Part shown: positions 1 to 52,609 of the stretch, piece after piece | How positions within the stretch are numbered: position 1 is the first letter of the stretch | How the letters are laid out: each line of letters opens with the position of its first letter | NCBI GenBank assembly: GCA_020891255.1 | Contig: BQFW01000001.1 | Location: 372,001 to 436,000 of the forward strand | DNA length: 64,000 nt | Direction: 5' to 3' | DNA from: Entomortierella parvispora E1425 | Taxonomy: Eukaryota; Fungi; Mortierellomycota | Notes under the pieces: generated by a model | Told to the model about the DNA's origin: nothing | Databases searched by the model: none | What the model saw: the letters and a program-made list of their open reading frames with translations, nothing else | Translations under genes and position numbers: made by a program

Positions 1-650
1 CGTCGTCCTTGAGTACCGCGATGAGGGAATGAATAGCTGGTTCCTGCAATGAAAACTGTTGGCCTAATACCTCTGCTGCGGAAATCCTCACTTGCCGGTC
101 GTCATCTTTGAGTGCAGCGATCAGGGACGTGATAGCTGACTCTGGTAATGAAGACTGCTTCCATAATGCCGATGCTGCAGAAGACTTGACGTTTTTATCT
201 TCATCCTTGAGTGCGGCGATGAGGGAATGAATTGCTGGTTCCAGGAATGAGGACTGCTTGTCTAATACCCTTGCTGCGGAAAACCGGACATCTTTATCAT
301 CATCCTTGAGTGCAGCGATGAGGGAATTGATAGCTGGTTCCGGGAATGAAAACTGTTTGCCTAACACCTCCTCTGCGGAAATCCTCACCTGCCGGTCGTC
401 ATCTTTGAGTGCAGCGATGAGGGAATTGATAGCTGGTCCCTGCAATAAAGACTGCTTGCCCGATGCCTCTACTGCTGAAGACCTGACTCGCCAATATTCA
501 TCCTTGAGTGCAGCGGTGAGGGAATGAATAGCTGGTTCCGGCAATGAAGACTGCTTGGCTATGCCGATACTGCAGAAGACTTGACGTTTTTATCGTCATC
601 CTCGAGTGCGGCGATGATGAGCTGCAACGCTGATTTCGACAGTAGGGAGC
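1..650 (-). repeat. 99-nt (33-aa) HEAT-repeat array of NLR1
   Basis: The motif tccttgagtgc or a close variant recurs near 6, 105, 204, 303, 402, 501 and 600. Units translate as KDDDKNVKSSAASALxKQSSLPExAIxSLIAAL. Confidence 0.93.
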
Positions 651-3600
651 GTGATCCTAAAGTATGTAAGAGTGAGGTTTTGCTCGAATGCGCTGAATTT
701 ATAGCTTCAACTAGGAGTGCCTCAGGGAACGACGGTCGACTGCCTAGCATGCTTCTACTGAAAATATTACGGCGCAAGCGTATCTCCAGGTGTAGCCATC
801 TTGCAAGCTCTGAGTCGTACGAAGCCACGACTGTCGGGTCCAATCGGGCCCGCGCTTCATGAAGGCAAGAGACTAGGATCTGCTGGTGGCGTCCTCCAAT
901 CAAATCCCGTGGCTCTCCTTGCAGAAGTTCAAAAAAATTGGCCAACGGGTCTCCAGCTAATAATCCTGCCACCATCGACCATACAATTTCATACTGAGGG
1001 TTGTATTTGTGATGGTGAACAAAGGCCGTCATCTCCCCCGTATCCATCATTCCAACTGAACATTGCTGAGGTTGAAAATGGCGCACTATCCATGTTGCCG
1101 CGAAATATTCTTGGAACGTCAGATGTAGGAAATGCCAGAGTCGTCGAGAATTGTAGTTTTTGAGATCCGCTGCCGAATCAGCCGTATGTAAAAACGACGT
1201 TTCTTTCATGTGCTCGACCAGGTGGGTAGGCGAAAGCTGTTGGCTAGCTGGTGTAGAGCTCTTCAGATCTTGAAAAGCAGAGCGCATGTCTTTTTCTTCG
1301 AACTCGATTTGGTGATGGTTGGTCATCCCTTTGAAGGCGAGATATCCAAGATGCTGCAGCTCAGTCGCCATCAGCTTGTCAATTTCCTCGGGTTCATAAC
1401 CATGGAGTTGTCGCTCAGTCAGCTCTATTCCACCATCAGTTTTTTTGAGCCGAAGTGCATCCTTGCACCAGAGTTTCCGCACCATTAGTTGATACAGCTG
1501 TGTCATGGTCACTGCCCCGCCATCTGTTGGGAGTGAATTCCAGCTGAAGCAGATCACGTCGAGCTGTACTGGGATGTTGGCGAGTCCTTGAATCAATGGC
1601 GTTTGTCGAATGAACTCCTGGACTGTCCTTGATGGCTCAGGATCGAGCACATTGACCACAAAATCCGTGACATTCTGTTGGCTGAATCCAACAGTTTCGA
1701 GCTCCAGATCAAGTGGTGGTAGTAGTTTGCTGTCCAAGCCAGAGGGTCTTGAGGTGATGATGACCTGTTGCCGCCCAAGTAACATCTTCAAGAAAGATCG
1801 GAAGGTGCTACTTTCGTTCCCTTCGGCCTCTGTGATAATCTCATCCAGACCGTCCAAGATGAAAAGAACCTTGCCCCTTTGAGCGCATGTCACAAGAGTG
1901 GTGGCGAGTGCCACTTGCTCTTGATTGAAGTCCTGAGAGACGAAAACCTTCTCGATAAATAGTCCTTCCAAGGTGCGGCTCTTGAGTCCCCTGAGATGAC
2001 GCAGCGGAATCCAGAGCACGACTTCGAAGAGATCCGTCCAGAGTCCATTCTGATGAGCATGAACGAGTTTCTTGCAAAGTGTCGATTTGCCAATGCCTGC
2101 TCGTCCTTGAACCAAGATCCTTTTAGGAACATCCTCCTTGCCATCCCGCAACTCGCGCTTGTTGAAGAGTTGTTCTAGAGGAATAAGCGACTGGGTGTCT
2201 GTGTTCCGTACCCTTTCGCCACTGGGCATCCGATGAAATACGGCCGCTTGCTCTTTGAGCTCCTGTTTCTCCTTCCGTCGATTTTCTGGTGCCTCCACAA
2301 TCGCGAGATTGACAAAGCATGTCCCCAGATCCAGCTCCTCGCCTGAAATTCTGAGGATATGCAGGTTGGGTGCGTGATAGTTCTTGAGGGCCGATTGAAT
2401 GTCACTCAAACTTGAGATTCGAGGGGCATCTGGTAGGTTCTCAACCTTTGCATGCCGACAGTTTCGATCCTGAACAGCTTTCAACAGTCTAGCCCTTGGC
2501 ACTGAATGCCTATCCGGATCCGTGAATTTGAGATTGATCCAAACTGGCGAATGTTGATCGGCAAAAGGTTCTAACTGTGTGTTCTTCCTTGTCATTTCTT
2601 CCAATAGCGTCCTGGCGGCTATATATGGAGCGAGAAAAAAAAACATTGGCATCAGGACTGAATATCTTTGATATGCTATTCCTGTTATTCCTTGACAGTC
2701 ATGGTGTATAGGGATCTCACCTTCAAACTGTATGACATTTCGGGATTCCACGATAGTGAGTACGTCAAAGATGACCTGATCAACCTCCTTCTGGCGATCC
2801 CAAAGTGAAGCATCCTTGTAGAGTGTTTCAATGAAGGCAATTGCCTCTCGCTGCATCTCCAGGCTCCATCGGTTATCAAGTGCAAACTGCCCAAGCAACT
2901 GGCAGATCCCCCATTGAAACATGAGTTCGTGTCGGCACGGTGTAGTGGTAACCAACGCCTTGAACTCCACTAGCCTTCCAGTATCGATATACGATTTGGC
3001 TTTACGAATGGCATGGTACCATGCGCTCTTGAACTTCAGGCACTCCTTGACTGTGAATGTTAGACTGCCATCGGCGCCTTTGATTGCATCATTCAAGACA
3101 GCCTTGAGATTGCCGATGCCAGCTTTTCCGGCATTGTAAAGTTTTTCCAGGCTTTCGAGCGTGTCCCTCAGGTCCGTTGGGTCAGGCACATTGGCCAGTC
3201 CTGCTCCAACATTCAATAAAAACCAGAATCGTCTGAATCCTGCATGCCAAATATCGTCATCATCAGGCACATTGAGCAGAGCCTGCGTGGCATAGTGAAC
3301 TTGAAATGTCAAGTAAGGGTGTTCGTTTGACTCGATCTCTCGAAGGAACTCCGTCAATGGTCCATGAAGGTTGACACGGTCGACATCTTTGATGTTGGCG
3401 TCCACCATCGCATCCAAAACACGCGAAACAGCAAGTAGCAGCGGATATCGATACTCTGGTGAGCGAGTAAGCTTGAGTCGCTTGAGCAGGCACCGAAGGA
3501 TACTCTCAAGGTCGTCCACGTTGAGGGTTCCTGGGGTGGCTCCTTGAATCGTAATTGCCAAGCCATTCAACGGATGCAACTGTAGAATCTCTGACTCGTT

Positions 3601-4564
3601 GACAGCGTCGATGAAAGTCGCGATGAGGAACTGAGAGTGCTCTTCACTGAGCACAGGGGCCAGTTGGACAACCTCAGCAACACTAGCCGCATCCTTCATA
3701 TTGTCCTTGGTAACTGCGTGGATGACATCGTCGACCATGGTCTCCAAGCGATCTTTCTCACCCGAATCATTCAAGGTGTCAAGTCGATACCTGAGATAAT
3801 CCTGAGAAAGATCGTTATTTTGAACTGACGGCTGCAAAAGTGCGAGACAGCAGGCGAGTTGCAGAGTAGTTTCCAGTTGCTCTCCTGGATCTGGCAGCCG
3901 ATGTAGGTTACGCTTGGGATTAACATTCGTACCAAAGAATGATGGAGATCCTAAGGCTGAACTTGCTCCATAACCGAGATGGCTGGTTGAGAGAGAGGAT
4001 GAGACGAATGGTGAGGCGTTGAGGTAGTGTTGACAGCTGCTGCGGCGGTAGTGGCAATAGAAGAGGGACTGGAGGCGTTGTTGTTTGTCAATGCTGAAGA
4101 GCTCCAGTGAGTGACTCCTCCTTGAGCGATTGCCGGAGAGAACCCTGGTCCTACCAAAGACGGTGCGATAACAGCAGGATGGAGCCTCATTCTCTCGTCG
4201 AGTTCTTGTCTAGTAGTTGTGCAATACCAAATGTTCAATGTAAGTAGAGTGCTTCCAAGATGCCGTTTCCTCAATGGGGAACAATAGTCAGCTACCTTAG
4301 GGCGGCAGCTCTCTTTCTGCACTTGTCTGCTTTTTCCTTCAGCAGTTCTCCTGAGAGATCCAGCACCACGGCAAGATTCAGGAATGCGGCAATCATCTCC
4401 TCCATATCCTTGGAATTGGTCCTCTTGACATCCACTTTGGCGAGGGTATTCTTTGCATTTTGATAATGCTTAATGACGTTGGGTTCGGAACCCATGGCTT
4501 TTCGAGCTTCCTCAGTGCTGGCTGTTGCCTGAGTTAAGGCCACTTGTGCAGTAAGATGCGGCAT
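1..4564 (-). pseudogene. NLR-like gene 1 (helical N-terminal exon - ARM-like domain - NACHT - HEAT repeats) with two 1-nt deletions; runs off the window start
   Basis: Exon 1 starts at ATG 4564; intron 4210-4295 (GT..AG). Frameshift near 3970 (AISV-AT-GASSALGSPSFF compared with the paralogues). Intron 2619-2720. Walker A QGRAGIGKST and Walker B LFILDGLDE. A deleted T at ~560 (GCA TTA GCC to GCA TAG) creates the stop at 559-561; HEAT repeats continue stop-free in another frame to position 1. Confidence 0.88.
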
Positions 4565-14636: not shown

Positions 14637-14760
14637 GCCTCAATGAATTGGTCCCTGGGGGGAAAAAAAAGAAGAGCAAAAATCGAGAGTGAGCTTTTTT
14701 TGCAAGCAGTGAACCGGCTCGGTGCACCGGTTCCTCCTTTTCGCTCGGTCCCAGTCCCTA
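14637..14760. mobile_element. Probable transposon terminus (…CCCAGTCCCTA) shared with ~34666-34816; truncates the NLR 3' fragment
   Basis: cctcaatgaattggtcc…ggtgcaccggttcct…cccagtcccta occurs at both sites. The homology ends exactly at the TAG that stops ORF 14758-15237. Confidence 0.5.
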
Positions 14761-15873
14761 GAATAGCTGGCTATCAAAGAGACGGTCCATTTCATCATCT
14801 GACAGATATGGCACTGCTTTGAACAATGAACGGCTGTAGTCTCCAAGAATTATGGTGGTGTAATGTCTAACGTTCGAATCGTCGTCCATGAGCAGGGCGA
14901 TTAAAAACCGCACAGATGATTCCTGCTTGGAAAAATGGTGATCCAATGTCGATACTACTGCAGAGCCAAGATTTTGACCTCCATTCTTCAGCGTGGCAAT
15001 GAGCGTGGCGATGAGTGTCTCGACGACTGACTCGGGCAACGGAGAATACTTGTGTAATACCAATGTTGCTGAATGCCTGATATTGACATTGGCGTCTGTA
15101 AGTGTGGCAAGGAGAGACTGGATGGCTGATTCCTGCAATGAAGGCTGTTCGAATAGTACCGATAAGACTGAGAGCCTGACGTCCCAACTGTGATGCCTGA
15201 GTGTTGCGATCAGAGATTGGACGGCTGATTTCTGCAATAGGGATTGCTTGATAATACCAGTGCTGCTGAAAATCTCTATCGCCCTTGAGTATAGTGAAAA
15301 GGTACTTGATGACTGTCTCCGATAACAAAAACTGGCTACCTAATGCCAGTTCTGCTGCAGACCCGACACTTTCATTGTCGTCCTTGAATGCATTAATGAG
15401 CGCTTGGGTGGCAGATTCTGACAATACAGAGCGAGTCCTTGTTCGAATGTGGAGAACCTAATTAATCGACTAGAAGAGTCTCAGGGAGGGACAGTCGGCA
15501 GCCTAGCATGCTTCTGCCGAAGTTGTTTTGACGCGTGTGCATCTCCAAGTGCAGCCACCGCATGAGCTCTGATTCCAGTGCCTCTCGGACTGGAGTTTCT
15601 AATCGTTCTCGAGCCTCTGTCAGACAAGATGCGACGACCTGTTGATGGCGTCCTCCAATCAGATCGCGCGGCTCTCCTTGTAAACGCCCAAAAAATGCGC
15701 TCAGCTGCTCTCCTTCCAGCAGAGCTGCCACCATGGACCACACAATCTCATATTGAGTGGTCATACCTTTGTCGGTGAACAAAGACGGTTAACACCTCCG
15801 TGGGCATCATCCCACCTAAGAAGTGTAGCCGTTGAGGTTGAAAATGGCGCACGATCCACGTGGCCGCAAAAAG
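14758..15873 (-). pseudogene. 3' fragment of an NLR-like gene (post-NACHT region and HEAT repeats) with several frameshifts
   Basis: FAATWIVRHF at ~15870-15840, QYEIVWSMVAALLEGE, RDLIGGRHQQ and HEAT units are spread over three ORFs (15462-15782, 14867-15424, 14758-15237). Confidence 0.88.
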
Positions 15874-16182
15874 TGATGGGGGCAGAGAGACAAAAGGGCC
15901 AGTGGTGAGACAGAGAGAGAAAAATAAACGTCAGGGGAAATGTAGGCCCTCCCCTCCTCCCCTTCGACAGTCAGTCAACGCAAGTGGATTTTTTTTTTGA
16001 CTGTCTCCATGTCGCTGACTTGGATGGGGGTGGGTTTGTGTGACATGGTGACTGTTTTCCTCAAGTTTTGTGCCACCACCATTATTCTTCCCCCTCCAAG
16101 GGACTCTATCTGTGTGTATCTTTCTTTATTGATCTCACGTGACTCCAAAGAAAAAATTGCTCTGCAATAAAGGGATCTCTCG

Positions 16183-17172
16183 ATGCATCTCTCAGATCTC
16201 CATCTTTCTTTTTCACGCGGCCGGACATTAATCATCCCCCGAAACTCGACTGATCCTGATCTAATGTCCGATGCCACCACCCAATCTTCCCCCGACATTG
16301 CCACCTTGGCAGCTGCGGTCCTATCTCTTACCCAGAAACTATCTGACCAAGATCGACTCCTCAAGGAGCTACAGGACCAAGCCACTGAGAGCGACATTCG
16401 TCCTGGACAAGTGGTCTACAAGAGTGACCGAGCAACCACTCTCTTACAATACCCGGAACTTCAGAATCAGTACCCAGCAATCACACAAAAACACTTCTTC
16501 AACACTGTCCTCCCTGCAGGACATAACCTCTTTGACTGGAACGACTATCACTACACCGATGGTATGGTCTACAAAGCACCACCAGTCTTGGAACATCAGG
16601 GCGTCACCCTCCCAGAGTTGGCTCGCAAACATGAGCAGGACCTGGCCAAGATTCAGGGACACATGGCCAACTCCACGAGATTGTTCGACACACTCGTCGA
16701 CGAAATTCTCACATATGAAATGGACGCAGACGAGCTCGCCAAGCACGTCATTTCATTTGTCAACACTGCCCGCATCTTGGTATCTAACGACGCCTCCAAG
16801 ATCAGCCTCATGCGGAAGGACATCTATCTCCGCCATCTGGAACTCCCAACTTCAGAGCCCCAGGAGAATGCTATCCTCACTCTGGAAGACCTCGCCAAAC
16901 GTAGAACGACTGTGGACCTCGTCAGCAAGACTTACACCAAGCCAAGCGTCAAGGAAAGCAAGAGACCCTTGCATAAGAAACCCGGGTTCAAGAAGAAGCA
17001 ACCCGAGGACTCAGACAAGAAATCTACCCACGAGAAGTCAAAGGAGTCAACAAATAGCCGTGACGGTGGCGGCAGGAACAACCGCCCTTACAAGGCCAGA
17101 AAGTCGAGCAACTACGACGACAACAAGTCTGCAGGAGACAAGGGAAACGGATCAGAGAAGGAGCGCCAGTAG
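16183..17172 (+). CDS. DIRS gag-like protein (start probably MSDATTQ)
   Basis: First ORF of the element, basic C-terminal tail, homologous to ORF 45189-45857. Confidence 0.8.
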   Translation: MHLSDLHLSFSRGRTLIIPRNSTDPDLMSDATTQSSPDIATLAAAVLSLTQKLSDQDRLLKELQDQATESDIRPGQVVYKSDRATTLLQYPELQNQYPAITQKHFFNTVLPAGHNLFDWNDYHYTDGMVYKAPPVLEHQGVTLPELARKHEQDLAKIQGHMANSTRLFDTLVDEILTYEMDADELAKHVISFVNTARILVSNDASKISLMRKDIYLRHLELPTSEPQENAILTLEDLAKRRTTVDLVSKTYTKPSVKESKRPLHKKPGFKKKQPEDSDKKSTHEKSKESTNSRDGGGRNNRPYKARKSSNYDDNKSAGDKGNGSEKERQ

Positions 17173-19035
17173 GAGCACGCCTTCTCCAATTCAAACGGGA
17201 ATGGGAGGAGATGACAGATTCAACTTGGGTCAACAACATTGTCAGCAAGGGGTACTCGATCGTCTTCAGCAAACCACCGCCAATGCGCCTCCCACCAATC
17301 CACGATCCCTACACCACACCAGCGGAGAAGGAGGAAATAAACAAAGAGATCGTTTCTTTATTACAAAAAAGGGCCATAGAAGAATGCTCAGGCTGGGGAT
17401 ATTACAGCCGTCTATTCACAATACCCAAGAAGACAGGGGGCCTCCGCCCTGTCCTCAACCTTCGACCTCTCAACCAACACCTGAAGGCCCCACATTTCAA
17501 GATGGAGACGCTCACTCACATCTGCCAAATGTTGCGGCCGAAGGATTGGTTGACATCAATCGACTTAAGCGACGCCTTCCTCCACGTCGCCGTACAGCCG
17601 AAAAAGTCGACGCTACCTACGCTTCCGATGGCACGGGAAGACATATCAGTTCAGGACCCTTCCATTCGGTCTCTCACTGTCCCCTTACGTCTTCACCAAG
17701 ATCATACGACCCATCCTGCAGTGGGCACGCAAACAGGGGATCCGCATTTCAGCATATTTAGACGACATATTAGTTGCCGCAACCAGCAGAGAAGAGTCAG
17801 AAAGACACACTCTCATGGTACGTCAGAAGCTGGAACGACTGGGATTCCTCATTCAGAACGAGAAATCAATGCTTACGCCTTTGCAACAGATCAATCACCT
17901 GGGATTTCACATAGACACCGTCCAAATGTCACTGTCAGTCCCGGGGAACAAGATCCGAGACCTGAGGAGAGAAGCCAACAAGATGCTGCAGGCAGCAGCA
18001 GTCCCGCTGAAGAGATTGGCGTCCTTCATAGGGAGAGCGATGTCCATGACAGTGGCCATCTTTCCAGCACGACTAAAGACGCGCCGACTCATCCAAGCTC
18101 AGAACTCAGCATTAGCAAGGAACTGCCCATGGACGGAGTCTGTCACACTGGACCACCAATCGAAAGAGGATCTTCAATGGTGGTGCAAAAACCTGTCGAC
18201 ATGGAATGGTCAGGGATTCCTCCCCCAGAGGTCAGAGATCGATGTATTCACGGATGCATCTCAGGACGCATGGGGGATAGTCTACGAGGACGAGGAGATC
18301 TCGAAGACATGGACACAGGAGGAGCAACCGTATCACATCAATTACAAGGAATTGAAGGTGATATGGCATCTGATACACCTGCCGGACATGCGCGGCAGGA
18401 CAATCCAGGTAATCTGCGACAATACGACGGCAATTGCGCAGATAAACAAGTTTGGAGGGACCAAATCAAAGCGATTGCTGGACCTAGCAACACAAATTTG
18501 GGACTATTGCATCAAGACGGGAACCCGACTCATGACAACGTACGTACCGTCTCAGTTCAATCCAGCCGACTCACCATCGAGACGCATGACAGCACAGTTG
18601 GAGTGGTCGATCAACAACTCGTTCTATCGACAGCTAGACTCGACCTGGGGGCATCACTCAGTCGATCTATTCGCCACGGCAAAGAACGCGAAGACTCAAC
18701 GCTACGTCTCCTGGATGCACGAGGAGACAGCGTGGAGACAGGATGCGTTCAGCTTCAGTTGGAAGGACCTGGGCCGAGTCTACATCTGCCCACCGTGGTC
18801 ACTCCTCAACCGAGTCCTGGAGAAGATCAGAACGGACAAGGTGCAGGCGACAGTGATCACACCACAGTGGCCTGCTATGATTTGGTACCCTACAATCCAG
18901 GCCATGTCAACACACAGCCCAATCCCAGTACCGAGGACAATGGTACAACCCGCACCAGGAAACAGCCCACAGCCACTGGAGCGGAACCCCATGTGGCAGT
19001 TAACAGCGTGGAGCGTCGACGGCAGCAAGCTGTGA
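17142..19035 (+). CDS. DIRS RT - RNase H - adenine-methyltransferase-like ORF, interrupted by one extra A at 17601-17605
   Basis: PVGARLLQFKREW…FTIPKKTGGLRPVLNLRPLN…IDLSDAFLH in frame 3. After removing one A it reads SRRYLRF…LPFGLSLSP…AYLDDIL, then FTDASQDAWG (RNase H) and DLFAT…DAF…YICPPW (MTase-like). Confidence 0.92.
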
Positions 19036-20081
19036 CCACAGGGGCCGACGCAGGAGTCATTCGCCGATTGTTTGACTCCAAATCCGCTCAGGAAAGGAAC
19101 AAGAGCACATCGAGTCAACGAACATTCACGCAATGGATGCAGGAGAGAGGTCGACCACTAGAGGATACCTCACCTACGGACTTGATGAACTTCCTGAACT
19201 ATGGAGTGGAGATTAGGGCTTGGAAGCCGCAAACGGCCCGAGCCTACTTGTCATCAGTACTCAAACTCTTCCCGAGGGACCGTCAGGAAGAGTGGCGAGC
19301 GGATGAAAATCTGTCAGATTTTCTAAAGGTCATTGGTGCACACACACTCAAGCGGCTACGTCACGACGACGCGGATACGACACCTATCTTCATCGAGATC
19401 CTCAAGAAGGGTGAGAACAAGGGCCTAAACATTAGGCACTTGACATCGAAGACATGCTTCTTGCTGGGACTGGTAGGACTCCTTCGACCGGACGACTTGG
19501 CTTGTATAGACACAAAGCAGTGCCGAATTCGAGATGGAGTGCTGGAATTGACCATCGTCTCTCCCAAGGAACGTCGAGATGGACAACGCATTATCAAGAC
19601 CGTCTTGATACATCCGCACACAGATCCAATCTTTTGCCCGGTAGAAGTGTATCAGGAGTACCGTAGGCGTACTGAGAAACACGACGAACATGCAAGGCAG
19701 CAACACCCCAAGCTGGACAAGGAGTTGTTGGAGGTTGAAATAATACCCCTAATCAGGGAGATCAGCTATGGCAAATCGCCTCTGGGAGCAGAGAGAATCT
19801 CCAAGTACCTTGCCGTCCTCCTGGATCTGATGCCCAGAGAGAAGGGGCAACCCCGCCCAAAGGTCAGGGCGCTGGGAGCTACGAACGCCCTCAAGAAAGG
19901 GGTTCCGTTGGAGGAAGTGACCGTTCAAGGGAACTGGTCATCGCCTACCATGGTGGAGAACTACTATCGAATTTCAAGGACCCTCGTTAGCAACTTCACC
20001 AACACTCTTCTTCCCCGACATCTGGATTCACAGATAGAGTCCCTTGGAGGGGGAAGAATAATGTCTAGCGTTGCCGAATGA
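19036..20081 (+). CDS. DIRS tyrosine recombinase domain (C-terminal part of a long overlapping ORF)
   Basis: LLRPDDL (first Arg), CPV, PKVRALG (second Arg), GNW and NYYR (Tyr). The frame is open upstream across the RT/RH region. Confidence 0.88.
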
Positions 20082-20132
20082 AATGAAGGCTAAAGCAACA
20101 TTTATTCGACACCGACAAGGGACTCTAGATGT
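20029..20132. repeat. DIRS internal complementary region (ICR)
   Basis: 20029-20063 is the reverse complement of the left terminus (16080-16114); 20062-20132 is the reverse complement of the right terminus (20260-20330). Confidence 0.95.
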
Positions 20133-20739
20133 CCCACCCGGCCCGCCCTAGGCATATCTTTGCGAGTAGATGGAGATCTGAGAGATGCATCGAGAGATCC
20201 CTTTATTGCAGAGCAATTTTTTCTTTGGAGTCACGTGAGATCAATAAAGAAAGATACACACATCTAGAGTCCCTTGTCGGTGTCGAATAAATGTTGCTTT
20301 AGCCTTCATTTCATTCGGCAACGCTAGACAGTTGCACGGTCCTCAAAATCGAGCTCCATGCAGAGAGAGCACCTCGCTGACTGAGTTCTGCTCGACGCGA
20401 ACGACCACAACGTGCAAAAGGCGGCGTCTCGGCGATGTTCTCGCTTTTCTTCCTCACTCTCACTCCCACGCACACCCATTCATTAGCGCAATCCCATCAA
20501 CTCAAGTCAAAAGTGCCGACAGTAATAGTAATGGGAGAATCCTTACCCCGAGCGCACCGACTCGGCGAGATCATGTTTGAGAAAGTCAGCGCGCACGCCG
20601 CTTTTTTTGGTTGCACAAACCCACCCTCCTCCATGTCAGCGACATCTCGCTGACTATATTTGAGCGGGGCTAGTCATCCTTAATTTTCCCGGTCCCTCTG
20701 ATTTGAGTCTGCGTCATGTCTTTCACGACCTTCCTCAGG

Positions 20740-27947: not shown

Positions 27948-30616
27948 CTAAACGTTGAAGCCCTTGTCATTCGCAGACGAAATGCACTTTGATGCATAGT
28001 GAGAAAAGACGATGTCACTGACAGTATCAGACGTCAGACGAGTACGCTTGTCTGTAACTGTGTTGCCAGCAAAACTGAACATGCGCTCCGAAGCTACAGA
28101 GGTAGCAGGCATAGCAAGATACTTCCTTGCCAATTGTGCCATGAGTGGATACTCGTCTTTGTTTTCCCTCCACCAATGGAATGGATCAACAATTGCACGC
28201 TCTCTTGGTCGAGCGAAATACCTTGTGGCCTCATCTCTCGCCGTTACTGGAGTAGGGATCCGATCCTCATCCGTTTCAAGATACGCAAATACACTGTCCT
28301 TGTGACTAATAGCTTCGACAGGGTTCGAGGGAGCCGCCTCAGGAACTGGCTCCCGATCCGCCAGCCGCATACATTCTGCCCGAATCTTAGTCTTGATCAA
28401 CCCGACGCGGTCTTCATCGCGGATATACCAAAGGTTATGGAACGATGGGTGAAACGCAGATGCAACTATCACAGTATCTGTCAACTCGACCCTGTTCTCG
28501 AGCTCAATCACCAGATCATCGCGGAAGTCGGCCATAGGTCCGACCTCGATCTCCATGCCCCGTAGTTGTGCAGCAATTGACATTACCCAAGGAGCCATGG
28601 TCGCCAAAGTACCGTTCTCCGACGAGGAGAATATCTGCGTAGTCCGGAACATAGGCTTAAGAATCTCGATGAGTATGTCGATTCGACGCCATGACGCAGG
28701 GGCAGGGAGGCGTTCCCTGAGCTTGGCAGCAGCGACAGGGTCTGCCTCGTCGCCATCACTTAGCCTTTGAAGGACATCTTCCATGGACTTGAGTAGATGT
28801 CTTGCCCGCTCAAGCATCGTCAGGGTGCTGTTCCATCGGGTGACAACGTCCATCATCACAACCAACGCTCTCGAGGTTGGGTTGAGACGTTCTTGAGACC
28901 CTTGAAGCAACTGAGTCATTTTCGGGCTTGAGTGAAACAATTTGCACAACTTGTGGACACTGTCAACAAGGCTCCGGATGTCGTAGTGTTCGTCAACCTC
29001 CAGTGTGCTCTTGATTGCATTATGTACACTGTGGGCCAGGCATGGGATTCGAGGTAAAGACGACATGGCGCACGCATTCTCCACAGCCCTGGCGCTGTCA
29101 GTAGTAATCGAATTGATCATCAGATTAAGATCCCATTTGAAGATTATCTCCCCTATTCAGAGTCATGAAAAAGAACCAAAGTCAGGAAAAAGATCATCAT
29201 GTAGATTTCAAGGACAACGCACCATCAAATCATGGACTTACTAATTAGACCTGCCATCGCAAACGCAGTGTGCGGATAAGGTTGAGGAGCCATGTCCAAT
29301 GCACACTCATGTTGGTGAAAGTTGCTATCCAGCCACTGGAACGTGAAAGACATAAATGGCTTTCCAGCATCACTTGTCCAACTGTCAATGGTCATTGAAC
29401 CACTGATACAGCTCCGATCCAAGAGGGTTTTGAGACGTTCAGTCAACATCAATCGATGGTCCAGAAGGCCAGTCCTCGCAGTGCGGCCACAAGGAATCGT
29501 AAGAGATGAGTTGAAGAGACGGATAAAGGCTCTAAAATAGTCCGAGTCCAACACGCTGAAAGGTTGCATATCTGAGACCAGCCAGTTCAATGCGGAGGTG
29601 AGGATGACCTTGTTGCTTGGGATAGTTGACATTGAGTCACGGATAGACGTTTGTGTCATTGTCACATCCTCGCCATTCCTGTGTCCACCTTTGAGCTCGG
29701 TATAGACTGAGCGATGCGCCTTCTTGAAATGGTAATTAAGAGTGGAGGAGGAACTCTTTGGAGAAAAGACGCTATTGCAGTGGGGCTGCCCACAGATCAA
29801 CTTCCACTGCATTTGCCCGCCTATCTTCTTCTGTCCAGCCTTAAAATATAGCTTCCATACCCCTACAAAACAAAAAAAAAAACTAGCCCAGGAAGGTTTT
29901 AACAACTGCATCAAACAAATCAAACGTAAAGGCATACCAGGAGCTTCGGGGGGAGGATTGGGATCAGGGGGTAAGTCTCCAGTGGAGTCGTTGGATCGTT
30001 CTGGCCTCAGGATTGGAGGGAAAATAGGGCGCGACGGTTGAGGACTTAGTAATGGATGTAGTGCCTCACGGAACAAAAGGGTAGGCGTAAGGCTCCTTTC
30101 CCTTTCTTCAGAAGCAGAAAAGGCGTCTTGATCAAAATAGGCATCGTCGTCAACATCAGAATCAATGCTGAACGGGTCAATGGCTGACTCTTCTTCATTT
30201 TCATCATCAATTTCAGAATCTTCATCCTCATCTTCAGACTGACTTAGTCTTCGCTTCGGTAGTTGTTTACCAGAACCGCGGGAATTCTGGGATGCATCAT
30301 CCGTAACTACGGCCGGGGGAGAAGATGCAACTGCTGAAGCTTGAAGGACTGACGAAGAAGTCGATGCAACTGTTGAAGATCGCAGGGCCGATGAGCTGGG
30401 TGACACCGCCGAGGAGGAAGATGCAGCTGTTGAAGACCTCTGGGTTGACGAACTGGACGTACGGTTTGACGGTTGAAGGACTGACGAAGATGATGATGCA
30501 CCTATTGACGATCGCAGGGTTGGGGGTCGTCGTGTTGGCAGCACCGGCATGGGCACAGATTTACGAGGACGAACAACAGGCTTGGGGCGTTCCTTGACCC
30601 TCTTTTTGGGAGGCAT
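27948..30616 (-). CDS. hAT transposase (834 aa): BED zinc finger, RNase-H-like core, hATC dimerisation domain
   Basis: Exons 30616-29938, 29862-29242 and 29152-27948 join in frame (2505 nt). Motifs: VWKLYF…ICGQPHC…HFKKAH; TIDSWTS; ITTDSA; CLAHSVH; DVVTRWNST; WW…YP…LARKYLAMPATSVASERMFS. Confidence 0.93.
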
Positions 30617-38549: not shown

Positions 38550-40645
38550 ATGATTCCGATCCTGGACAGCCTTGATCAGTGAGATATTCGTGCTGTAATG
38601 ACCAGACGAACTTGCTGACTTGTCATTAATGCAAAACGGCAGTTGCTGATGGGACGTTGAGTTCAGATGTGTGTTCAGTTTCCTCACTTCTTCCAGTAAT
38701 GACTTGGCCACTAAAACCGAAACAGAGAGACAAAAAACGCGTCAGGATCTTTACCTGTCGCATGTTTTGATTTTTACATGTGATATGGGGTTGGCATATT
38801 GTTCGTACATACCTTCAAAGTGCATGTCATTGTTGGATAACACGTTGATAAGCACGTCAAAGACGACCTGATCAATCTTTTCCTGCCGAATCCAAAGTCC
38901 ATTGTCCATATAGAGAGCTCCAAGGAAAGAAATTGCATCTTGCCTGGAGTTCAGGCTCCACTGGGTATGGACTGCAAACTGGCCAAGTAGCTGGCAGATT
39001 CCCCATTGAAATATGAACTTGTGTCGGCACGGCGTAGTTGTAACCAGCTCCTTGAATTGCACGAGTCGGCCAGTTTCAATATACCATTCTGCTGTTCGGA
39101 GGGCGCGGTACCAAGCACTCTTAAACTTCAGCCCTTCCTTCACTGTGAATGTAGAAGTCCCACCATCCTCGATTGTTCTCAGAATGCCTTTGAGGTTCCT
39201 GACGCCTGCTTTGCCAACGTCATAGAGTTTCTCCAAGCCTTCGAGTATGTCTTTGAGTTCCCTCGGGTCAGGTATTTTGGCCAATCCTGCGCCGCCTTTA
39301 AGCACCAGCCATAGTCGTCTGAATCCTGCATGCCAGATATCATCATCGTCAGACACATTGAGCAATGCCTGGGTAGCGTTGGCTTGGAATGCCAAATAAG
39401 GGTTATCACTCGACTCTGACCCTTGAAGAAGTTCTGACAATGGTCCATGAAGGTTGACGCGATCGACATCTCCGACATCGGCATCCACCATTGCGTCCAG
39501 AACCCGCGATGCTGCCAGCAGCAGGATATGGTATTGACGGTCCATAGAGTGGATAGATTGCAGTCGCCTGTGCAGGCACCGGAGAATGGTTACAAGGTCG
39601 TTTGGTTCCATGGATCCTGGCGCTGCTCCCTGAATCGCCTTAGCCAACCCATCCAGAGAATGCAAATGTAGAATCTCTGACTCATTCACGGTGTCGATGA
39701 GCGTTTTGATGAGAAATCGCGAATGATCTCAGTTGAGCACAGGAGCCAAATGGATAACCTCGGCGATTGCAGTAGCATTCTTCATAATGTCCTTTGCAAA
39801 TGACTGAATGACTTGAACGGACAAGCGTTCCAGGCGTTCTTTCTCCTCCGAGTCATTCAAGGTGTTGAGTCGCCACTTGAGCTCATCTGGCGGAAGCTTG
39901 TCGTCTTGAAGCGATGGTTGTAAAAGAGCAAGACAATAGGCGAGTTGTCGTGTGCTCCCCAACGACTCGCCCTTACTAGGCAATGGGAAAAAAGGGAACT
40001 CAGGAACCACATTCTCACTGAAGAATGATGGAGACCCCGAGTCCACAGTTCCCACCACAATTGAAACAGCTGCCTGAGAGGAGAGTGTGGGCAAGTACTG
40101 AGGAGCGGAGGCAGCGCTAGACATAGTTTCAGTGGAGGTGCTGCAAAAAGTGGCAGTAGAGGCAGAGTTGATTGTTGCTGCTGAGGAGCTCCGGTAGTTG
40201 ATTCCTGCTTGGGCGATCGCTGTAGAGAATCCTGCCCCCATAAGAGATGGCGCGATGGTGGCTGCATAAAACCTCATTCTCTCATCGCGTAATTGCCTGG
40301 CAGGAATACAAATCCATATGGTCAGTATACAGCGTGGCTTCTCGATGCTGACAAGAGACAAAACCCCTCAACATACCTCAAAGGATCTGCTTGCAGTCTA
40401 CACTTGGTAGCCTTTTCCTGAAATTGTTTTCCCGCATGATCAAGTGCCGCGGCGAGGTCTAGGAACACAACAATCATCTCCTCCAGATGGGTGGGGTCCG
40501 TTCTCATAACATCGACGTTGGTGAGGGCCTTCTTTGCAGCCCGATAGTGCTTCATGACCTCAAACTCAGAACCTCGAGCTTTTCGAACCCCTTCGGTGTT
40601 GGTTTTTGCTTGCATCAAAGCATCCTGTGCAGAAAGATAGGGCAT
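38550..40645 (-). pseudogene. NLR-like gene 2, 5' fragment (helical exon and ARM-like domain), with a nonsense codon and truncated before the NACHT
   Basis: ATG 40645; introns 40297-40376 and 38711-38812. In-frame TGA at 39729-39731 where NLR3 has Arg (APVLSRDHSRF). Homology stops after AVQDRN (~38550) at a repeat shared with 14090-14620. Confidence 0.88.
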
Positions 40646-44735: not shown

Positions 44736-45188
44736 CCGCACATGTCCAGCTTAATAAAAGCACTGAAAAAAAATCGTCATCCTTTGCCATCACACGACCA
44801 GTTAAATGTTGAAAGTAATGAGGACCCAGATCATAGAATCATAGTGGAGGAGAGCACTTGCCAGTAAAATGTTATGGCGGTGTGACGACGAATCGAGACA
44901 AACAGAGTGAGAGAGTGAGAGAAAGAAAAAAAAAAGTGTGGAGTTGAAGGATGAGAAGGATGAAGGCAAGGGTACAAAGAGAAGGGCAATGGAGAGAGTA
45001 AAGGTGAGGACACACACCTCTGCGTTTTGGTGCGCCACAACCTCCAAAACGCGACAATTCAGTGATCACGTGGCGGCGATGTCAACTGCATCCTGCGCGA
45101 CCTCTCGGATCCTGCGGGATGTTCCTGTTTTCCTCATCTTTTTTTTTTTCACATGCAGCTGGACCATTCCCCCGTTTTCGACTGATCA

Positions 45189-45857
45189 ATGTCCAACACC
45201 ATGGAATCCAACAATGATGACACCCTTACCATGGAGCAGATGGCAAAGATGCTCAAAGTTATGCAAAAGCGTGTGGCCGAACTTGAGGCAGCAGCCTCAG
45301 ACGCAGTCCCCAGGCCAAACAAGGTCGTCGTCAGGAACGGCAAAGATGTTCTCCTACATTACCCAGAATTGTTGGAGGAGTACCCTGTCATCGCCCAACC
45401 CAAGTTTTACGATACGATCCTTGAACCAGACGACCGTTTCATTCAGTGGAATGACTTTTACCTCACCGACGGCATGGCCTACAACCCTCCCCCTGTTCTC
45501 CAACATGCAAAAGTCAAGCTCCCAGACCCTTCCAGGAAGCATGAGAGTGATCTCATCAAGATTCAAGGATTCATCGCCTCTTCAACCCGATTCCTCGACA
45601 CTTTCGCGGATGAGATTGTGGACTCCGAGAATCGCACCACGAAACTGGGACAGCGCATTATCGACTTCCTCAGCACGATGCGTGTCTTGGCTAGCAACGA
45701 CGCCAGCAAGATCAGCAAGATGCGCAAGAAACTCTACACTGAAGCGCTTGGACGCCGGGAAGATGATGGTGAAATAGCGCACCATACCCATACCCTTGAC
45801 AATGGCATCCGCAAAACGTACCGCAAGTATACCAGGGACAACAGCGCCTGGACCTAG
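45189..45857 (+). mobile_element. Truncated DIRS gag relic (second, diverged family member)
   Basis: LLHYPEL…WND…TDGM.Y..PPVL.H…KHE.DL.KIQG…STR..DT..DEI…SNDASKIS.MRK aligns with ORF 16183-17172. Confidence 0.85.
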
Positions 45858-46692
45858 GACAAGGATGGAACCAGGAAGTCAACCTCTTAGTCAAGCGACG
45901 TACTCCGGATAAAAATGTGGATGTACCAGCAGCGGAGAAGAAGGGCATCATAATACGGAGACAGATTGCAAGTCTGAGCGCCCTAAGCCAAAGAAGCCGA
46001 TCATGGGATGCCCAGCAACGAGAGGATATGGAACACAGACACCCTGTCTTGGAATAGCTCTTCAATCAACGCAAGTTTGCGTGATGGCAAGGAAAACATT
46101 CCATGAAGGATCCTAGTGCACGGAGAATAGGCATTCGTAAATGGGCTCTGTGCAGAAAACCTTGCTCGTAGAGTGCAGTGAAGGTTGGACGACCACCAGT
46201 TGCTTGGCCCTCTCTGGCCTTTTGCGCTTGATGGCGTTTCTGACCCCCTAACCTATTTTCCCCGATGCCTTTTTTTTTTTTTTTTTACTATCTGATCAGT
46301 CAGTTTATCTATGAAAAGCATTCGTTGACAACTGAGGTGAAAAAAAGCTCGCACATCGATGCCCATCCCGCTGCCTTGATCTCAAGAAAGAGTATTCTAA
46401 AGCGCTATTAAAGCAGCAAAGGTTGGTATGGACCTTAGCGGTCGGCACTATTCCTCTCTATCATTCTAGTAGCCAAACAAGATTCAGCACTCCAGAGCCA
46501 AGTATCTCAAATAAAGCTTTTCTTGTCCAGAAGAAATTTATTGAAAATCTCCATTGGTGCAAGTGTTCCTGAACAATCTGCGGGAGCCACCTAGTCCTTG
46601 GCAATCTGAAGAAGCCTGCTGCCCACGAATGATCCGATTTGTGTGTGCCTGAGATCAATACTCAGTGTGCTTGAGACAGAACTGTAACGTCA

Positions 46693-49600
46693 TTAAGGAT
46701 ATGGGTAATTCAACACCATCTGTTGGACAGCCTTGAAGACTGATGATATTCTATCCTGATTGTTGCTACCATCTGAAGCAAGTTGGAGTTGCAGCTCGCC
46801 TTGCTCAGTGTAGAGACACAGTCCATTGTCACATGCCTGTAAAGATATAACATTACTGCAGCTGTAAGGAAACAAGTGGTGGTTAAAAAGACAAAATATC
46901 TCATCTTCTGATAGGATTGGGAGTAACCTGAACAGAGATGGGCTATGACATCCAAGAATCTCTGAAACATAGGATGCAACTTCATCTTCGTCTTCATTGA
47001 CCATGGCGACAAGGGAACGGATGGCTGTTGACGGGATCGAAGACTGCCTGTCTGAAGCTGATACCATTGCAGATCTGGCAAACATATCATGATTTTTGAG
47101 TGCAGAGATGAGGGACTGAACGGCTGATTCTGAAAGCGAAGGCTGGTCGCTTAATATAAATGCTGATGAATACCTGGCTTCCCAGTCGTCATCCTTAAGT
47201 CCAGCAATAAGGGCTTGGATAGCTGATTCCGGTAACGAAGGCTGCTTGCCAAGTGCCAATGCGACTGAAGTCCTGACATGTTCATTGTCATTTTTGAGAG
47301 TGGCGATGAGGAACTGGATGGTTGACTCCGGCAAAGAAGACTGTTTGCCTAATATTAATGCAGCTGAAGACCTGACTCTTTTATCGTCACCCTTGAGTGT
47401 TTCCATGAGGGATCGGGTGACTGACTCCGACAAAGATGACTGTTTTCCTAATGCCTCTGCTGCTGAAGACCTGACGTTTTTATCATCATCCTTGAGTGCG
47501 GTGACGAGGGCCTGGACAGCTGGTTCCAACAATGAAGAATGCCTGCCTAATGCCTGTACTACTGAAGACCTGACATCGCATTCATCATCCTTGAGTTTAG
47601 CGATAAGGGACTGAATGGCTGACTCCGACAAAGAATTATGGTTGCCTAATGCCTCTGCTGCTGAAGACCGGACTCTTTTATCATCATCTTTGAGTGTGGT
47701 GACGAGGGACTGTATAACTGATGATGACAATGAAGACTGCTTGCCTAACGCCGATGCTGCCGAAGACCTGACATTTTTATCATCGTCCTTGAGTGTGGCG
47801 ATGAGGGACTGAATGGCTGACTCCGACAAAGATGACTGGTTGCCTAATGTCTCTGCTGCTGAAGACCGGACTCTTTTATCATTATCTTTGAGTGCGGTGA
47901 CGAGGAACTGTATAACTGATGATGACAATGAAGACTGCTTGCCTAACGCCGATGCTGCTAAAGACCTGACGTTTTTATCTTTATCCTTGAGTGCTGCAAT
48001 GAGGGACTCGATCGATGATTTAGGGAGTGAAGACTGACCGCGTAATATCAATGCTGCTGAAGACCTGACATATTTCTTGTCGTCCTTGAATGAGGCAATG
48101 AGGGACCGTATGGCTGATTCCGGTAATGCAGACTGCTCGCACAAAATTGATACTGCTGAAGACCTGAAGATTATATCGTCATCCTTGAATTTGGATATGA
48201 GGAACTGGATAACTGACTCCGGTAATGAAGAACTATAATCACTTAATATCTCTTCTACTGCCTGTTGGACAGCTAGGTTGTCATCGCTGAGTGCGGTGAT
48301 GAGGGAATGGATAGCCGATTCCGGTAACGGAGACTCGAGGCCTAATTCCTCTACTGCTGAAGACCTAACGTATTCATCCTCATGGATATCCTCGAGTACG
48401 GAGATGAAGGACCGAATGACCGATTCTGACCTTATGGAGCGAAACCCTAAAGTGCGTATGAGCGAGATCTTGTTCCATTTACATCGCGTCGAACGTAATG
48501 CTTCAACTAGAAGCGCGTCAGGGAATGACAGTCGACTGCCCAGCAAGCTTGCGGCGTCTCCATCGTCTTCACGCACCTGTATTTCCAGGTGTAGCCACCG
48601 CACAAGCTCGGAGTCGTATGCAGCTACGACTGCTGAGTCCAATCGAGTCCGCGCCTCATTCAGGCAAGAAACCAATATTTGCTGATGGCGTCCTCCAATC
48701 AAATCACGCGGCTCTCCTTGCAAACGTTCGAAGAAACCAATCAATGGTTCTCCTTCCAATAGTCCTGCCACCATCAACCATACAATCTCATACTGAGGGT
48801 TGTATTTGTGGCGGTGAAGAAAGGCCGTCATTTCCTCTGTAGTCATCATTCCAGCGGCGGAACATGATTGCTGGGGTTGAAAATGACGGACGATCCACGT
48901 TGCTGCAAAAAATTCCTGGAAGGTCAGGTGCAGGAAATGCCAGGCTTGTCGAGTACTGCGGTTTTTGAGATCCAAATTCGAATCCGTTGTATGTAAAAAC
49001 GATGTTTCCTTCATGACTTCGGCGAGATGGGTAGGCGAAAGTTGTTGGCTATTTGTTGTAGAGTCCTTCAGATCTCGAAATGCAGAGCGTAGGTCTTTTT
49101 CTTCAAACTCGATCTGGTGCTGGTTGGTCATCCCTTTGAAGGCAAGATATCCAAGATGTTGCAGCTCAGTCGCCATCAACTCATCGATTTCCTCGGGCTC
49201 ATAATCGTGAATTTGTCGCTCTGTCAGCCCCAAGCCGCCAGCAGTCTTCTTGAGTCGAAGGGCATCCTTGCACCAAAGTTTCCGCACCATCACTTGATAG
49301 AGTTCTGTCATGGTGACTACCATGCCATCTTTTGGGAGTGAATCCCAGCTGTAACAGATCACGTCGAGCTGTACTGGAATATTAACAAGTCCTTGGATCA
49401 ATGGCGTTTGTCGAATGAACTCTTGGACTCTCTTCGCTGGCTCGGGATCCAGTACCTTCAATACAAAGTCCTTGACATCCTGGTGACTGAACCCCACAGT
49501 TTCCAGCTCCAGATCGATTGTCGATAATAATTTTCTGTCCAGGCCAGACGGCCGCGAAGTGATGATGACATGTTGTTGCCCGAGCAACATCTTTAGAAAT

Positions 49601-51996: not shown

Positions 51997-52609
51997 CCTC
52001 TCGTCCCTTGCTTGCCTAATGGAAGTACAACTTTGCCTGTTTAGCACAGATATAGGAACTCACAAGCAGTACCTACCCAATTCTCATAAAAAAATATTAA
52101 AGAAAGAATAAACCTATTATCAGTCCGAGGTGAAAATTGGTGTTGACTGGGTGTGAAAATCTCATCAGAATTCTGTCTCACGCCCTTCCAACCCCGTTAG
52201 AATGGCCCCGAGCGCTGTTTCCTGTCATCTTCCGGAGTGAAAGATGCGGCTCCTGGCATTCTCAGTCCCCGTGCGCACTGAGTTACCGCTGAGTCTTCCT
52301 CCCCCGTTCTCTTTGGCGACTCGAAAATCTCTGTCTGCCTTTATAAATGCAAACTCGACTCCCATCATCTTGAAGACCCTTTCACCTTTGACAACAGAGG
52401 CAGATGTGGAGGGCATCTCCTTCTATGAACTCCACTTTGTAGTTGGACATGACTCGCGGGAAGTCAGGGAAAACAAATCGACCCACCCTTTGGTGGCGTG
52501 TGACTGACTTCCAAGTGAAACCGAACCACACGAATCGAGAAGTCTGGGCTCGAAATGCTGCATTCTTACATCTTCATTGCATCACCATCGCACATCTAAC
52601 TCCATTGCA

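Follow-up and report, generated by a model that had tools for sequence, protein, structure and literature searches.

A complete DIRS1-like retrotransposon is present on the forward strand of a 64,000-nucleotide stretch of the genome of the fungus Entomortierella parvispora E1425 (contig BQFW01000001.1, positions 372,001 to 436,000; this whole stretch is referred to as the window, and position 1 is its first letter). The reading frame that encodes the tyrosine recombinase (YR) of this element runs without a stop codon back through pol and nearly all of gag, an arrangement that recurs in 12 independent relatives and that is evidently held by selection, whereas the amino acid sequence read from the overlapped part drifts freely. 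It is rather probable that this young element represents a clade with a fixed three-frame layout, in which the YR frame is kept as a stop-free path entered by leaky scanning and pol is reached from gag by −1 frameshifting, a translation scheme that we infer from the arrangement of frames and start codons. To a bolder version of this account we give slightly less than an even chance: a whole clade of DIRS elements in Mortierellomycota would use all three frames of one RNA over ~2.7 kb, and the recombinase would be made at the C-terminal end of a ~140-kDa polypeptide in which the ~900 leading residues evolve without constraint, the open reading frame (ORF) being kept purely as a track for ribosomes. 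No settled account exists of how DIRS elements obtain both recombinase and pol from one RNA, and the long overlap between pol and YR, on record since DIRS-1 was sequenced, has been left unexplained.

Stop codons in the recombinase frame

In the window copy, the recombinase frame is stop-free from 16265 to 17605 in frame 2 and from 17064 to 20078 in frame 0, the change of frame being due to one extra base that is treated below. The pieces on either side of this frameshift were analysed separately, and all tests were carried out on the unchanged sequence. When synonymous codons were shuffled such that protein sequence and codon usage were retained, the YR frame was expected to contain 5.6 stops over gag, 2.7 over the N-terminal piece of pol (pol-N) and 9.2 over the C-terminal piece (pol-C), 17.5 in all, and none was observed in any of the three; no shuffle reached zero for gag or for pol-C. 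Over the same pieces, the third frame carries 12, 6, and 22 stops, as expected. Shuffles of codon order were also run.

Searches with pol returned a graded series of homologues from 83% identity down, and metagenome contigs scanned with the pol alignment gave 80 loci, several of which were inspected for the inverted terminal repeats (ITRs) and internal complementary regions (ICRs) of DIRS elements. Twelve independent lineages with mutual nucleotide identity of no more than 73% were defined (L002, L004, L005, L010–L015, L020, L023, and L031), which together with the window copy and its one indel make up the 13 lineages referred to hereafter. Compared with the window, they are 42–69% identical in pol-C and 22–39% identical or undetectable in gag, and in a quick maximum-likelihood tree of pol, they form one clade with it (SH-aLRT 98). 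The frame layout is the same throughout the 12, with pol in the gag−1 frame and the recombinase in gag+1, that is, pol−1, and a single YR-frame ORF of 1213–1314 codons covers gag, pol, and recombinase in every one of them. With the 12 lineages added together, ~236 YR-frame stops are expected from the synonymous shuffles, gag alone accounting for ~45, and none is observed in either case; the third frame is again at expectation. Contigs of the clade that are truncated at the 5′ end have the YR frame open up to the contig edge. Apparent exceptions inside the clade are L033, L022, and L026, the first two of which are accounted for as decayed copies: L033 has one YR-frame stop over gag versus 6.8 expected, and L022 retains the clade layout with a single indel near 1092–1129. 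At that place, the gag and recombinase frames of L022 both shift by one in what is otherwise an intact clade member, which makes it, after the window copy, the second such case.

Outside the clade the picture differs. In the same relative frame, gag of the sister clade contains 6 stops versus 6.3 expected (L036) and 7 versus 7.1 (L039), and gag of distant lineages contains 5 versus 6.7 (L049), 18 versus 23.6 (L070), and 13 versus 16.2 (L075). In the sister and distant lineages, the recombinase ORF does not open until about the pol start or beyond it, and in lineages at ~37–39% pol identity, the distance of the Parasitella protein P0087, it opens only at the pol start. Judging from these counts, the YR frame is held open over gag and pol by selection, and the extension of the overlap over gag is evidently clade-specific. 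A first-pass annotation of this DNA had proposed both that the frame spans gag and pol end to end and that selection keeps it open, and both proposals are borne out: the frame is a single ORF in the 12 lineages, none of which has a stop over gag, the sister-clade gags are not depleted, and gag codon usage, as examined by synonymous shuffles, does not account for the open frame.

The extra base of the window copy lies at a run of five A residues (A5) or immediately beside it, and it reshapes the ORFs of the element. Four are found on the forward strand of the unchanged copy, 16183–17172, 16271–17761, 17211–20081, and 17815–19035. The second (496 aa, frame 2) is out of register past 17605 and continues to a stop at 17759–17761, the third encodes 956 aa in frame 0, and the fourth, in frame 1, is open from 17569. 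Up to the A run, homology to reverse transcriptase (RT) is in frame 0; from 17608 onward, it is in frame 1. Given that the spacing from DAFLHV to YLRF is 85 nt in the window and 84 nt in nine relatives, one extra base is real relative to the family; it moves pol from frame 0 to 1 and YR from frame 2 to 0 together. A YR-frame protein of a metagenomic relative, P0122, matches frame 2 at 17138–17551 and frame 0 from 17604, and pol-N and pol-C form a single frame in all relatives. The first-pass annotation had thus located the frameshift correctly, and its arithmetic for the repaired element, a pol of 607 codons and a YR frame of 1269, agrees with the relatives, in which pol is 607 aa long (P0001, P0004, and P0005) and the YR-frame ORFs span the range given above; for its first alternative ORF, 16271–17605, the start and frame hold and the end does not, as the ORF runs on to 17761.

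As read from its frames, the unchanged copy cannot yield full-length pol or the full recombinase-frame product, and the 956-aa ORF is a chimera of the RT N-terminus, the extension, and the recombinase. The copy is disabled by one extra base in RT or possibly mis-assembled. At least seven near-identical annotated copies are found in E. parvispora: the "hypothetical proteins" EMPS_00095 and EMPS_03831 and those of five further loci (EMPS_03846, EMPS_04113, EMPS_06778, EMPS_09735, and EMPS_09902) match the frame-0 translation identically or almost so, and as most copies differ by 0–1 residues over ~800, the family must be very young. The gene models EMPS_03831 and EMPS_00095, which are on different contigs, read across the A run with no difference from the window; EMPS_00095, whose sequence is identical to the window translation, is possibly the window's own copy, and the other annotated copies begin 3′ of the run and are therefore uninformative about its length. 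The extra base may be an inactivating mutation shared by copies that are mobilised in trans, a context-specific assembly error in every copy, or, least likely, a programmed +1 slip. Among the near-identical contigs L027, L030, and L008 (99.9%), indels join pol and the recombinase frame into one (L027) or interrupt the latter (L030), and therefore frameshifted variants like that of the window either occur in other families as well or arise from assembly errors.

These copies also call for caution in annotation. The 789–826-aa "hypothetical proteins" of E. parvispora consist mostly of the unconstrained leader, and their models, which include a spurious intron, obscure gag and pol. The GenBank models splice out 72 nt at 17817–17888, and gag and pol are apparently unannotated at these loci. 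Only four long YR-frame proteins were recovered in the search because gag and pol are what gene callers generally predict in their place.

The leader and proposed routes to the recombinase

The ~900 codons that precede the recombinase had been interpreted in the first-pass annotation as dual coding, with an unknown N-terminal extension of the recombinase as their product, an interpretation that comparison of the lineages speaks against. Over all lineage pairs, amino acid identity in the YR frame is 14.3% over gag and 26.1% over pol, versus 13.2% and 23.2%, respectively, in a null made by independent synonymous shuffles; an equally small excess is seen in the untranslated third frame, and the pattern recurs in six independent nearest-neighbour pairs. 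Sliding windows along the family alignment revealed no 30-codon segment of excess conservation, alignment of the 13 lineages found their extension N-termini to be unrelated, and the extension has no Pfam match. In composition, it is rich in S, T, P, and R, basic, and poor in hydrophobic residues. AlphaFold, run twice on the halves of the extension with family alignments, predicted no secondary structure in either half, with a predicted local distance difference test score (pLDDT) of 41 for the upstream piece (16271–17605) and ~30 for the part over pol-C (model residues 1–466). Conservation of the recombinase frame begins only ~50–60 nt before the pol stop, at the motif EPxLV..E.KR. A conserved domain in the extension was thus rejected on identity, windows, N-terminal alignment, Pfam, and two AlphaFold runs, and what selection seems to maintain is the absence of stops rather than the protein sequence. 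With the frame open over two upstream genes in 13 lineages while its amino acid sequence drifts, being open for translation can be separated from coding for function.

The start codons are arranged with similar regularity. In 13 of 13 lineages, a YR-frame AUG is located 4–109 nt 3′ of the gag AUG, and the YR frame opens only a few codons ahead of its first AUG; L015 alone has an out-of-frame AUG in between, one that opens only 2 codons. Position −3 is a pyrimidine at the gag AUG in 10 of 13 lineages and a purine at the first YR-frame AUG in 10 of 13. Near the recombinase itself, the window has no AUG for ~590 nt upstream of the conserved YR N-terminus, and L011 and L012 are alike in this respect; therefore, at least part of the extension would have to be translated in these lineages to give a complete recombinase. 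A conserved start codon of the YR domain, which would serve reinitiation, was considered and rejected, as such an AUG is present in only 8 of 13 lineages and falls inside the conserved YR N-terminal motif.

Candidate sites for −1 frameshifting are found where gag and pol overlap. The heptamer G_GGA_AAC in the gag register of the window is present in the same overlap in L002 (at 1345), L005 (1300), and L031 (1054); among the others, L023 has G_GGU_UUU, seven lineages have only sites of the U_UUU_C type, and L010 has UCU UUU UCU. In many relatives, the first ATG of pol lies well within RT homology. RNA folding downstream of the window site was not significant (17142–17240, z = −0.86), and a possible GAGAAGG/CCUUCUC stem 6 nt past the heptamer is outside the minimum-energy fold.

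Put together, the clade signal points to a testable scheme built on adjacent AUGs and a −1 slip, in which the full-length RNA would be translated in three ways. Initiation at the first AUG would produce Gag, slippage by −1 where gag and pol overlap, at G_GGA_AAC or U_UUU_C, would produce Gag-Pol, and leaky scanning to the next AUG, 4–109 nt downstream in the +1 frame, would start a long leader, disordered and unconstrained in sequence, that takes ribosomes across gag and pol to a C-terminal Cre-like recombinase, giving a polypeptide of ~1250 residues. In the window copy, the extra base would break both long products.

Several observations weigh against this scheme. L002 and L004 have a further YR-frame AUG in good context 5′ of the gag AUG, at 387 (inside the left ITR) and 78, respectively, which fits simple leaky scanning less well, and in 8 of 13 lineages, a YR-frame AUG within ~40 nt of the pol stop allows termination-reinitiation there. 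Identity at four-fold sites, nearly saturated over all lineage pairs, is 0.39 in gag and 0.35 in pol versus 0.27 in the non-overlapped YR domain (six independent pairs, p = 0.002–0.004). As four-fold sites of gag and pol are better conserved than those of the YR domain, some extra constraint probably acts on the two genes; the excess persists in contexts unable to create a stop and is not specific to the recombinase frame. RNA structure, packaging signals, and composition are possible sources of such constraint. As to novelty, no description of a recombinase ORF spanning gag, or of an unconstrained overlap, was found in the literature; this coverage does not extend to Repbase or to earlier work on DIRS elements (Goodwin and Poulter 2001; Poulter and Goodwin 2005), and the arrangement may thus already have been described.

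Other explanations of the open frame have to be set beside leaky scanning along an unconstrained leader. If the ~900 codons, overprinted on gag and pol, gave the recombinase a functional N-terminal domain whose protein sequence is under purifying selection, the strong protection of the frame from stops would follow, the modest excess of synonymous conservation in gag and pol, seen even where no stop could form, would fit, and a composition-dependent role for a disordered, basic, S/T/P-rich region is conceivable; however, YR-frame identity is within 0.01–0.05 of the shuffle null with an equal excess in the third frame, and the lack of a standout 30-codon window, of related N-termini, of a Pfam match, and of an AlphaFold structure makes this unlikely. 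Similarly unlikely, in our estimate, is entry into the recombinase frame elsewhere, by a +1 shift from gag, a −1 shift from pol, or reinitiation at the pol stop, with the open frame serving another purpose such as sparing the genomic RNA nonsense-mediated decay after starts at the second AUG. The constant register, YR = gag+1 = pol−1, in nearly all lineages including those without the gag overlap, stop/start overlaps such as ATGA or TAATG at the pol stop in several lineages, and the opening of the YR ORF near the gag end in distant lineages, where a 5′ AUG cannot be the entry, are in line with it. Yet entry of this kind needs no open frame from the 5′ end, and the frame opens beside the gag AUG in every lineage; moreover, a Met near the pol stop is absent from the window, L011, and L012 and elsewhere lies inside the conserved YR N-terminal motif.

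Two further possibilities rank lower. The extra A might be programmed in E. parvispora, with a +1 slip on A_AAA_A leading to full-length pol and unshifted ribosomes passing from the RT N-terminus into the YR frame. A slip on the run would produce P-K-S-R-R-Y-L-R-F, which resembles the family sequence, the family is very young, and EMPS_03831 and EMPS_00095 read the run as the window does; but no relative needs such a shift, a trans-spread inactivating mutation or a context-specific assembly error in every copy is simpler, and we know of no +1 site that the A5 context resembles. On balance, a programmed extra A is improbable. That base composition or codon usage left the frame open as a by-product can be put down as next to impossible: the coding strand is T-poor and purine-rich (only 19.6% T in the element, with positive AT skew), but shuffles still give 236 stops versus none observed, the third frame is normal, and the gag of sister lineages carries the expected stops in the same relative frame. 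An origin by chance or codon usage was thus rejected by the synonymous and codon-order shuffles and the sister-clade control.

The element and its surroundings

By its termini and domains, the element is a DIRS1-like retrotransposon of the order DIRS, and its features are listed in Table 1.

Table 1. Features of the DIRS1-like element, and the second gag remnant, in window coordinates
Feature	Position	Strand	Details
Complete DIRS1-like retrotransposon	16080–20330	+	4251 bp; termini complementary to ICR; ITRs, gag, RT/ribonuclease H/methyltransferase, and YR present
Left terminus	16080–16205	+	left extension 16080–16096; left ITR 16097–16205
gag ORF	16183–17172	+	329 aa; coordinate frame 1; from the ORF list
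YR-frame ORF, upstream piece	16271–17605	+	frame 2 = gag+1; AUG 88 nt past gag AUG
gag/pol overlap	17064–17172	+	all three frames open; from the stop map
G_GGA_AAC heptamer	17142–17148	+	gag register; candidate −1 frameshift site for gag-pol
pol N-terminal piece	17211–17605	+	frame 0; RT fingers through motif A (DLSDAF); weak Pfam RVT_1
A5 run	17601–17605	+	context gccg-aaaaa-gtcg; extra base here or immediately beside
YR-frame extension over pol-C	17607–18983	+	frame 0 = pol−1; open, not conserved, predicted disordered
pol C-terminal piece	17608–19035	+	frame 1; rest of RT, ribonuclease H, Dam-like methyltransferase
Tyrosine recombinase proper	18984–20081	+	N-terminal helical domain and catalytic domain; start ~50 nt before pol stop
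ICR	20029–20132	+	left part (lICR) 20029–20063; right part (rICR) 20062–20132; 2-nt overlap
Right end	20168–20330	+	right ITR 20168–20276; right terminus/extension 20260–20330
Truncated, decayed gag remnant	44911–45899	+	second DIRS family resembling L002; gag frame 45189–45899

The two ITRs (109 nt) are 98% complementary, and the lICR and rICR are each 100% complementary to the corresponding end of the element (16080–16114 and 20260–20330, respectively); the same ICR layout is present in L002, L005, L010, and L031. The gag AUG is placed within the left ITR, and the YR stop codon falls within the ICR. Window gag is 28–39% identical to that of relatives (L001/L002, L005–L007, and L057) by tblastn; it has no Pfam match, and an exact look-up of the protein returned no record. 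pol-N is 46–78% identical to its counterparts in relatives. pol-C matches Dam, RT_RNaseH, and DNA_pol_viral_C in Pfam, the matches to RVT_1, RT_RNaseH, and Dam in the window pieces all being under the gathering score, and has 242 homologues, the top one 83% identical, which carry PF00078 and PF05869. No further domains, such as a protease or a DDE integrase, were detected by the Pfam scan of the pieces.

The recombinase occupies the C-terminal ~350 codons of the frame-0 ORF. Sequence-only matches to Pfam Phage_integrase and to Cre in PDB are weak, and the AlphaFold model (pLDDT 70–94) matches Cre in Foldseek (E 9e-8, probability 1.0). The catalytic residues R170, K197, R297, W320, and Y330 are invariant in 13 family sequences, and the His of HxxR is not conserved in the family, as has likewise been noted for the YR of MciDIRS1 (PMC3266345).

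Farther downstream, the window contains a gag remnant of a second family, 43% identical to the window gag and 53% to that of L002 (residues 1–246), with gag-frame stops at 45855 and 45888 and no pol or YR near 45189–45899. The first-pass annotation had taken it for a gag paralogue with an open +1 frame; the paralogue is real and its +1 frame is open from 44911 to 45777 versus 3.1 expected stops (P = 0.017), and the copy itself is truncated and decayed. It fits a relic of the clade-wide open frame and is weak evidence alone. At 44911–45189, the recombinase frame of the remnant is open with an AUG upstream of the gag AUG, as in the L002 and L004 families, and the motif WTIPPFSTDQCPTP is common to L002 and the remnant.

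The window also contains a cluster of NLR-like genes. Genes or fragments with ARM_5 and NACHT domains are located on the reverse strand at 559–3837, 38751–39689, 46693–50403, and 50482–52047, and also at 14758–15872; the ORF at 46693–50403 contains a long run of HEAT-like repeats. The DIRS element lies in or beside an NLR-like paralogue, because the sequence just upstream of it, 15001–15872, is 65–71% identical to parts of two NLR-like genes. On the reverse strand, the ORF at 27948–29120 has a hAT-family C-terminal dimerisation domain (E 5e-20) and is either a DNA-transposon remnant or a gene.

Comparison with known overlapping genes

In DIRS elements, overlap of pol and YR is well recognised, as the first-pass annotation had rightly assumed. 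Piednoel et al. 2011 described that the two regions can overlap considerably, with the catalytic domain in the non-overlapping 3′ end, and a "long ORF overlap" is recorded for all five fungal elements, RoDIRS1, MciDIRS1, PblDIRS1, and AmDIRS1/2 (PMC3266345). These fungal elements resemble that of the window in size (~4.3 kb), ITRs, left and right extensions, two-part ICR, gag, RT/ribonuclease H/methyltransferase, and YR, and MciDIRS1 shares with it the DLSDAF and xCPV motif variants. In contrast, only the pol/YR overlap is recorded for them, whereas the YR frame of the window begins next to the gag AUG and takes in ~91% of gag as well, a comparison made by published description, not by DNA. 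Given that the pol/YR overlap is already published, only its extension over gag looks new.

In Dictyostelium discoideum, DIRS-1 has three overlapping ORFs on one 4.5-kb mRNA, a full-length sense RNA whose promoter lies within the left repeat: gag is encoded by ORF I, YR by ORF II, and RT/ribonuclease H/methyltransferase by ORF III (PMC3950715, PMC7192593). ORF II overlaps ORF III and begins close to where ORF I ends, and the translation of ORFs II and III is not established (PMC3950715, PMC7192593). Unlike in the window clade, no ORF spanning the whole element has been described for DIRS-1, and further DIRS literature speaks of overlaps "primarily of ORF2 and ORF3".

The proposed step from gag to pol is comparable to the −1 frameshifting of retroviruses and long terminal repeat (LTR) retrotransposons in that pol lies in the gag−1 frame, the short overlap contains a heptamer of the X_XXY_YYZ form, and pol often has no start of its own. 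It differs from these sites in that no significant downstream structure was found and several lineages of the clade have only U_UUU_C, and it is known here from sequence alone.

A possible parallel to the proposed entry into the YR frame is offered by RNA viruses, in which leaky scanning gives access to overlapping genes, for example, the movement protein within the coat protein gene of luteoviruses and the capsid gene within the replicase gene of tetraviruses, and in which overprinted products are typically disordered and compositionally biased. As in these viruses, the weak first AUG of the window clade is closely followed by a second, which opens a +1 ORF of the same mRNA. The difference is that the overprinted sequence of the viruses is the functional product, whereas ~900 overprinted residues of the window clade are unconserved and the domain that is conserved is situated past the overlap. 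At ~2.7 kb, across two genes and in two different relative frames, the overlap of the window clade is also unusually long, and, if the scheme is correct, it would rank among the longest overlaps known on one strand and represent a distinct mode of expression for a 3′ gene, one that needs neither splicing nor an internal ribosome entry site nor a subgenomic RNA.

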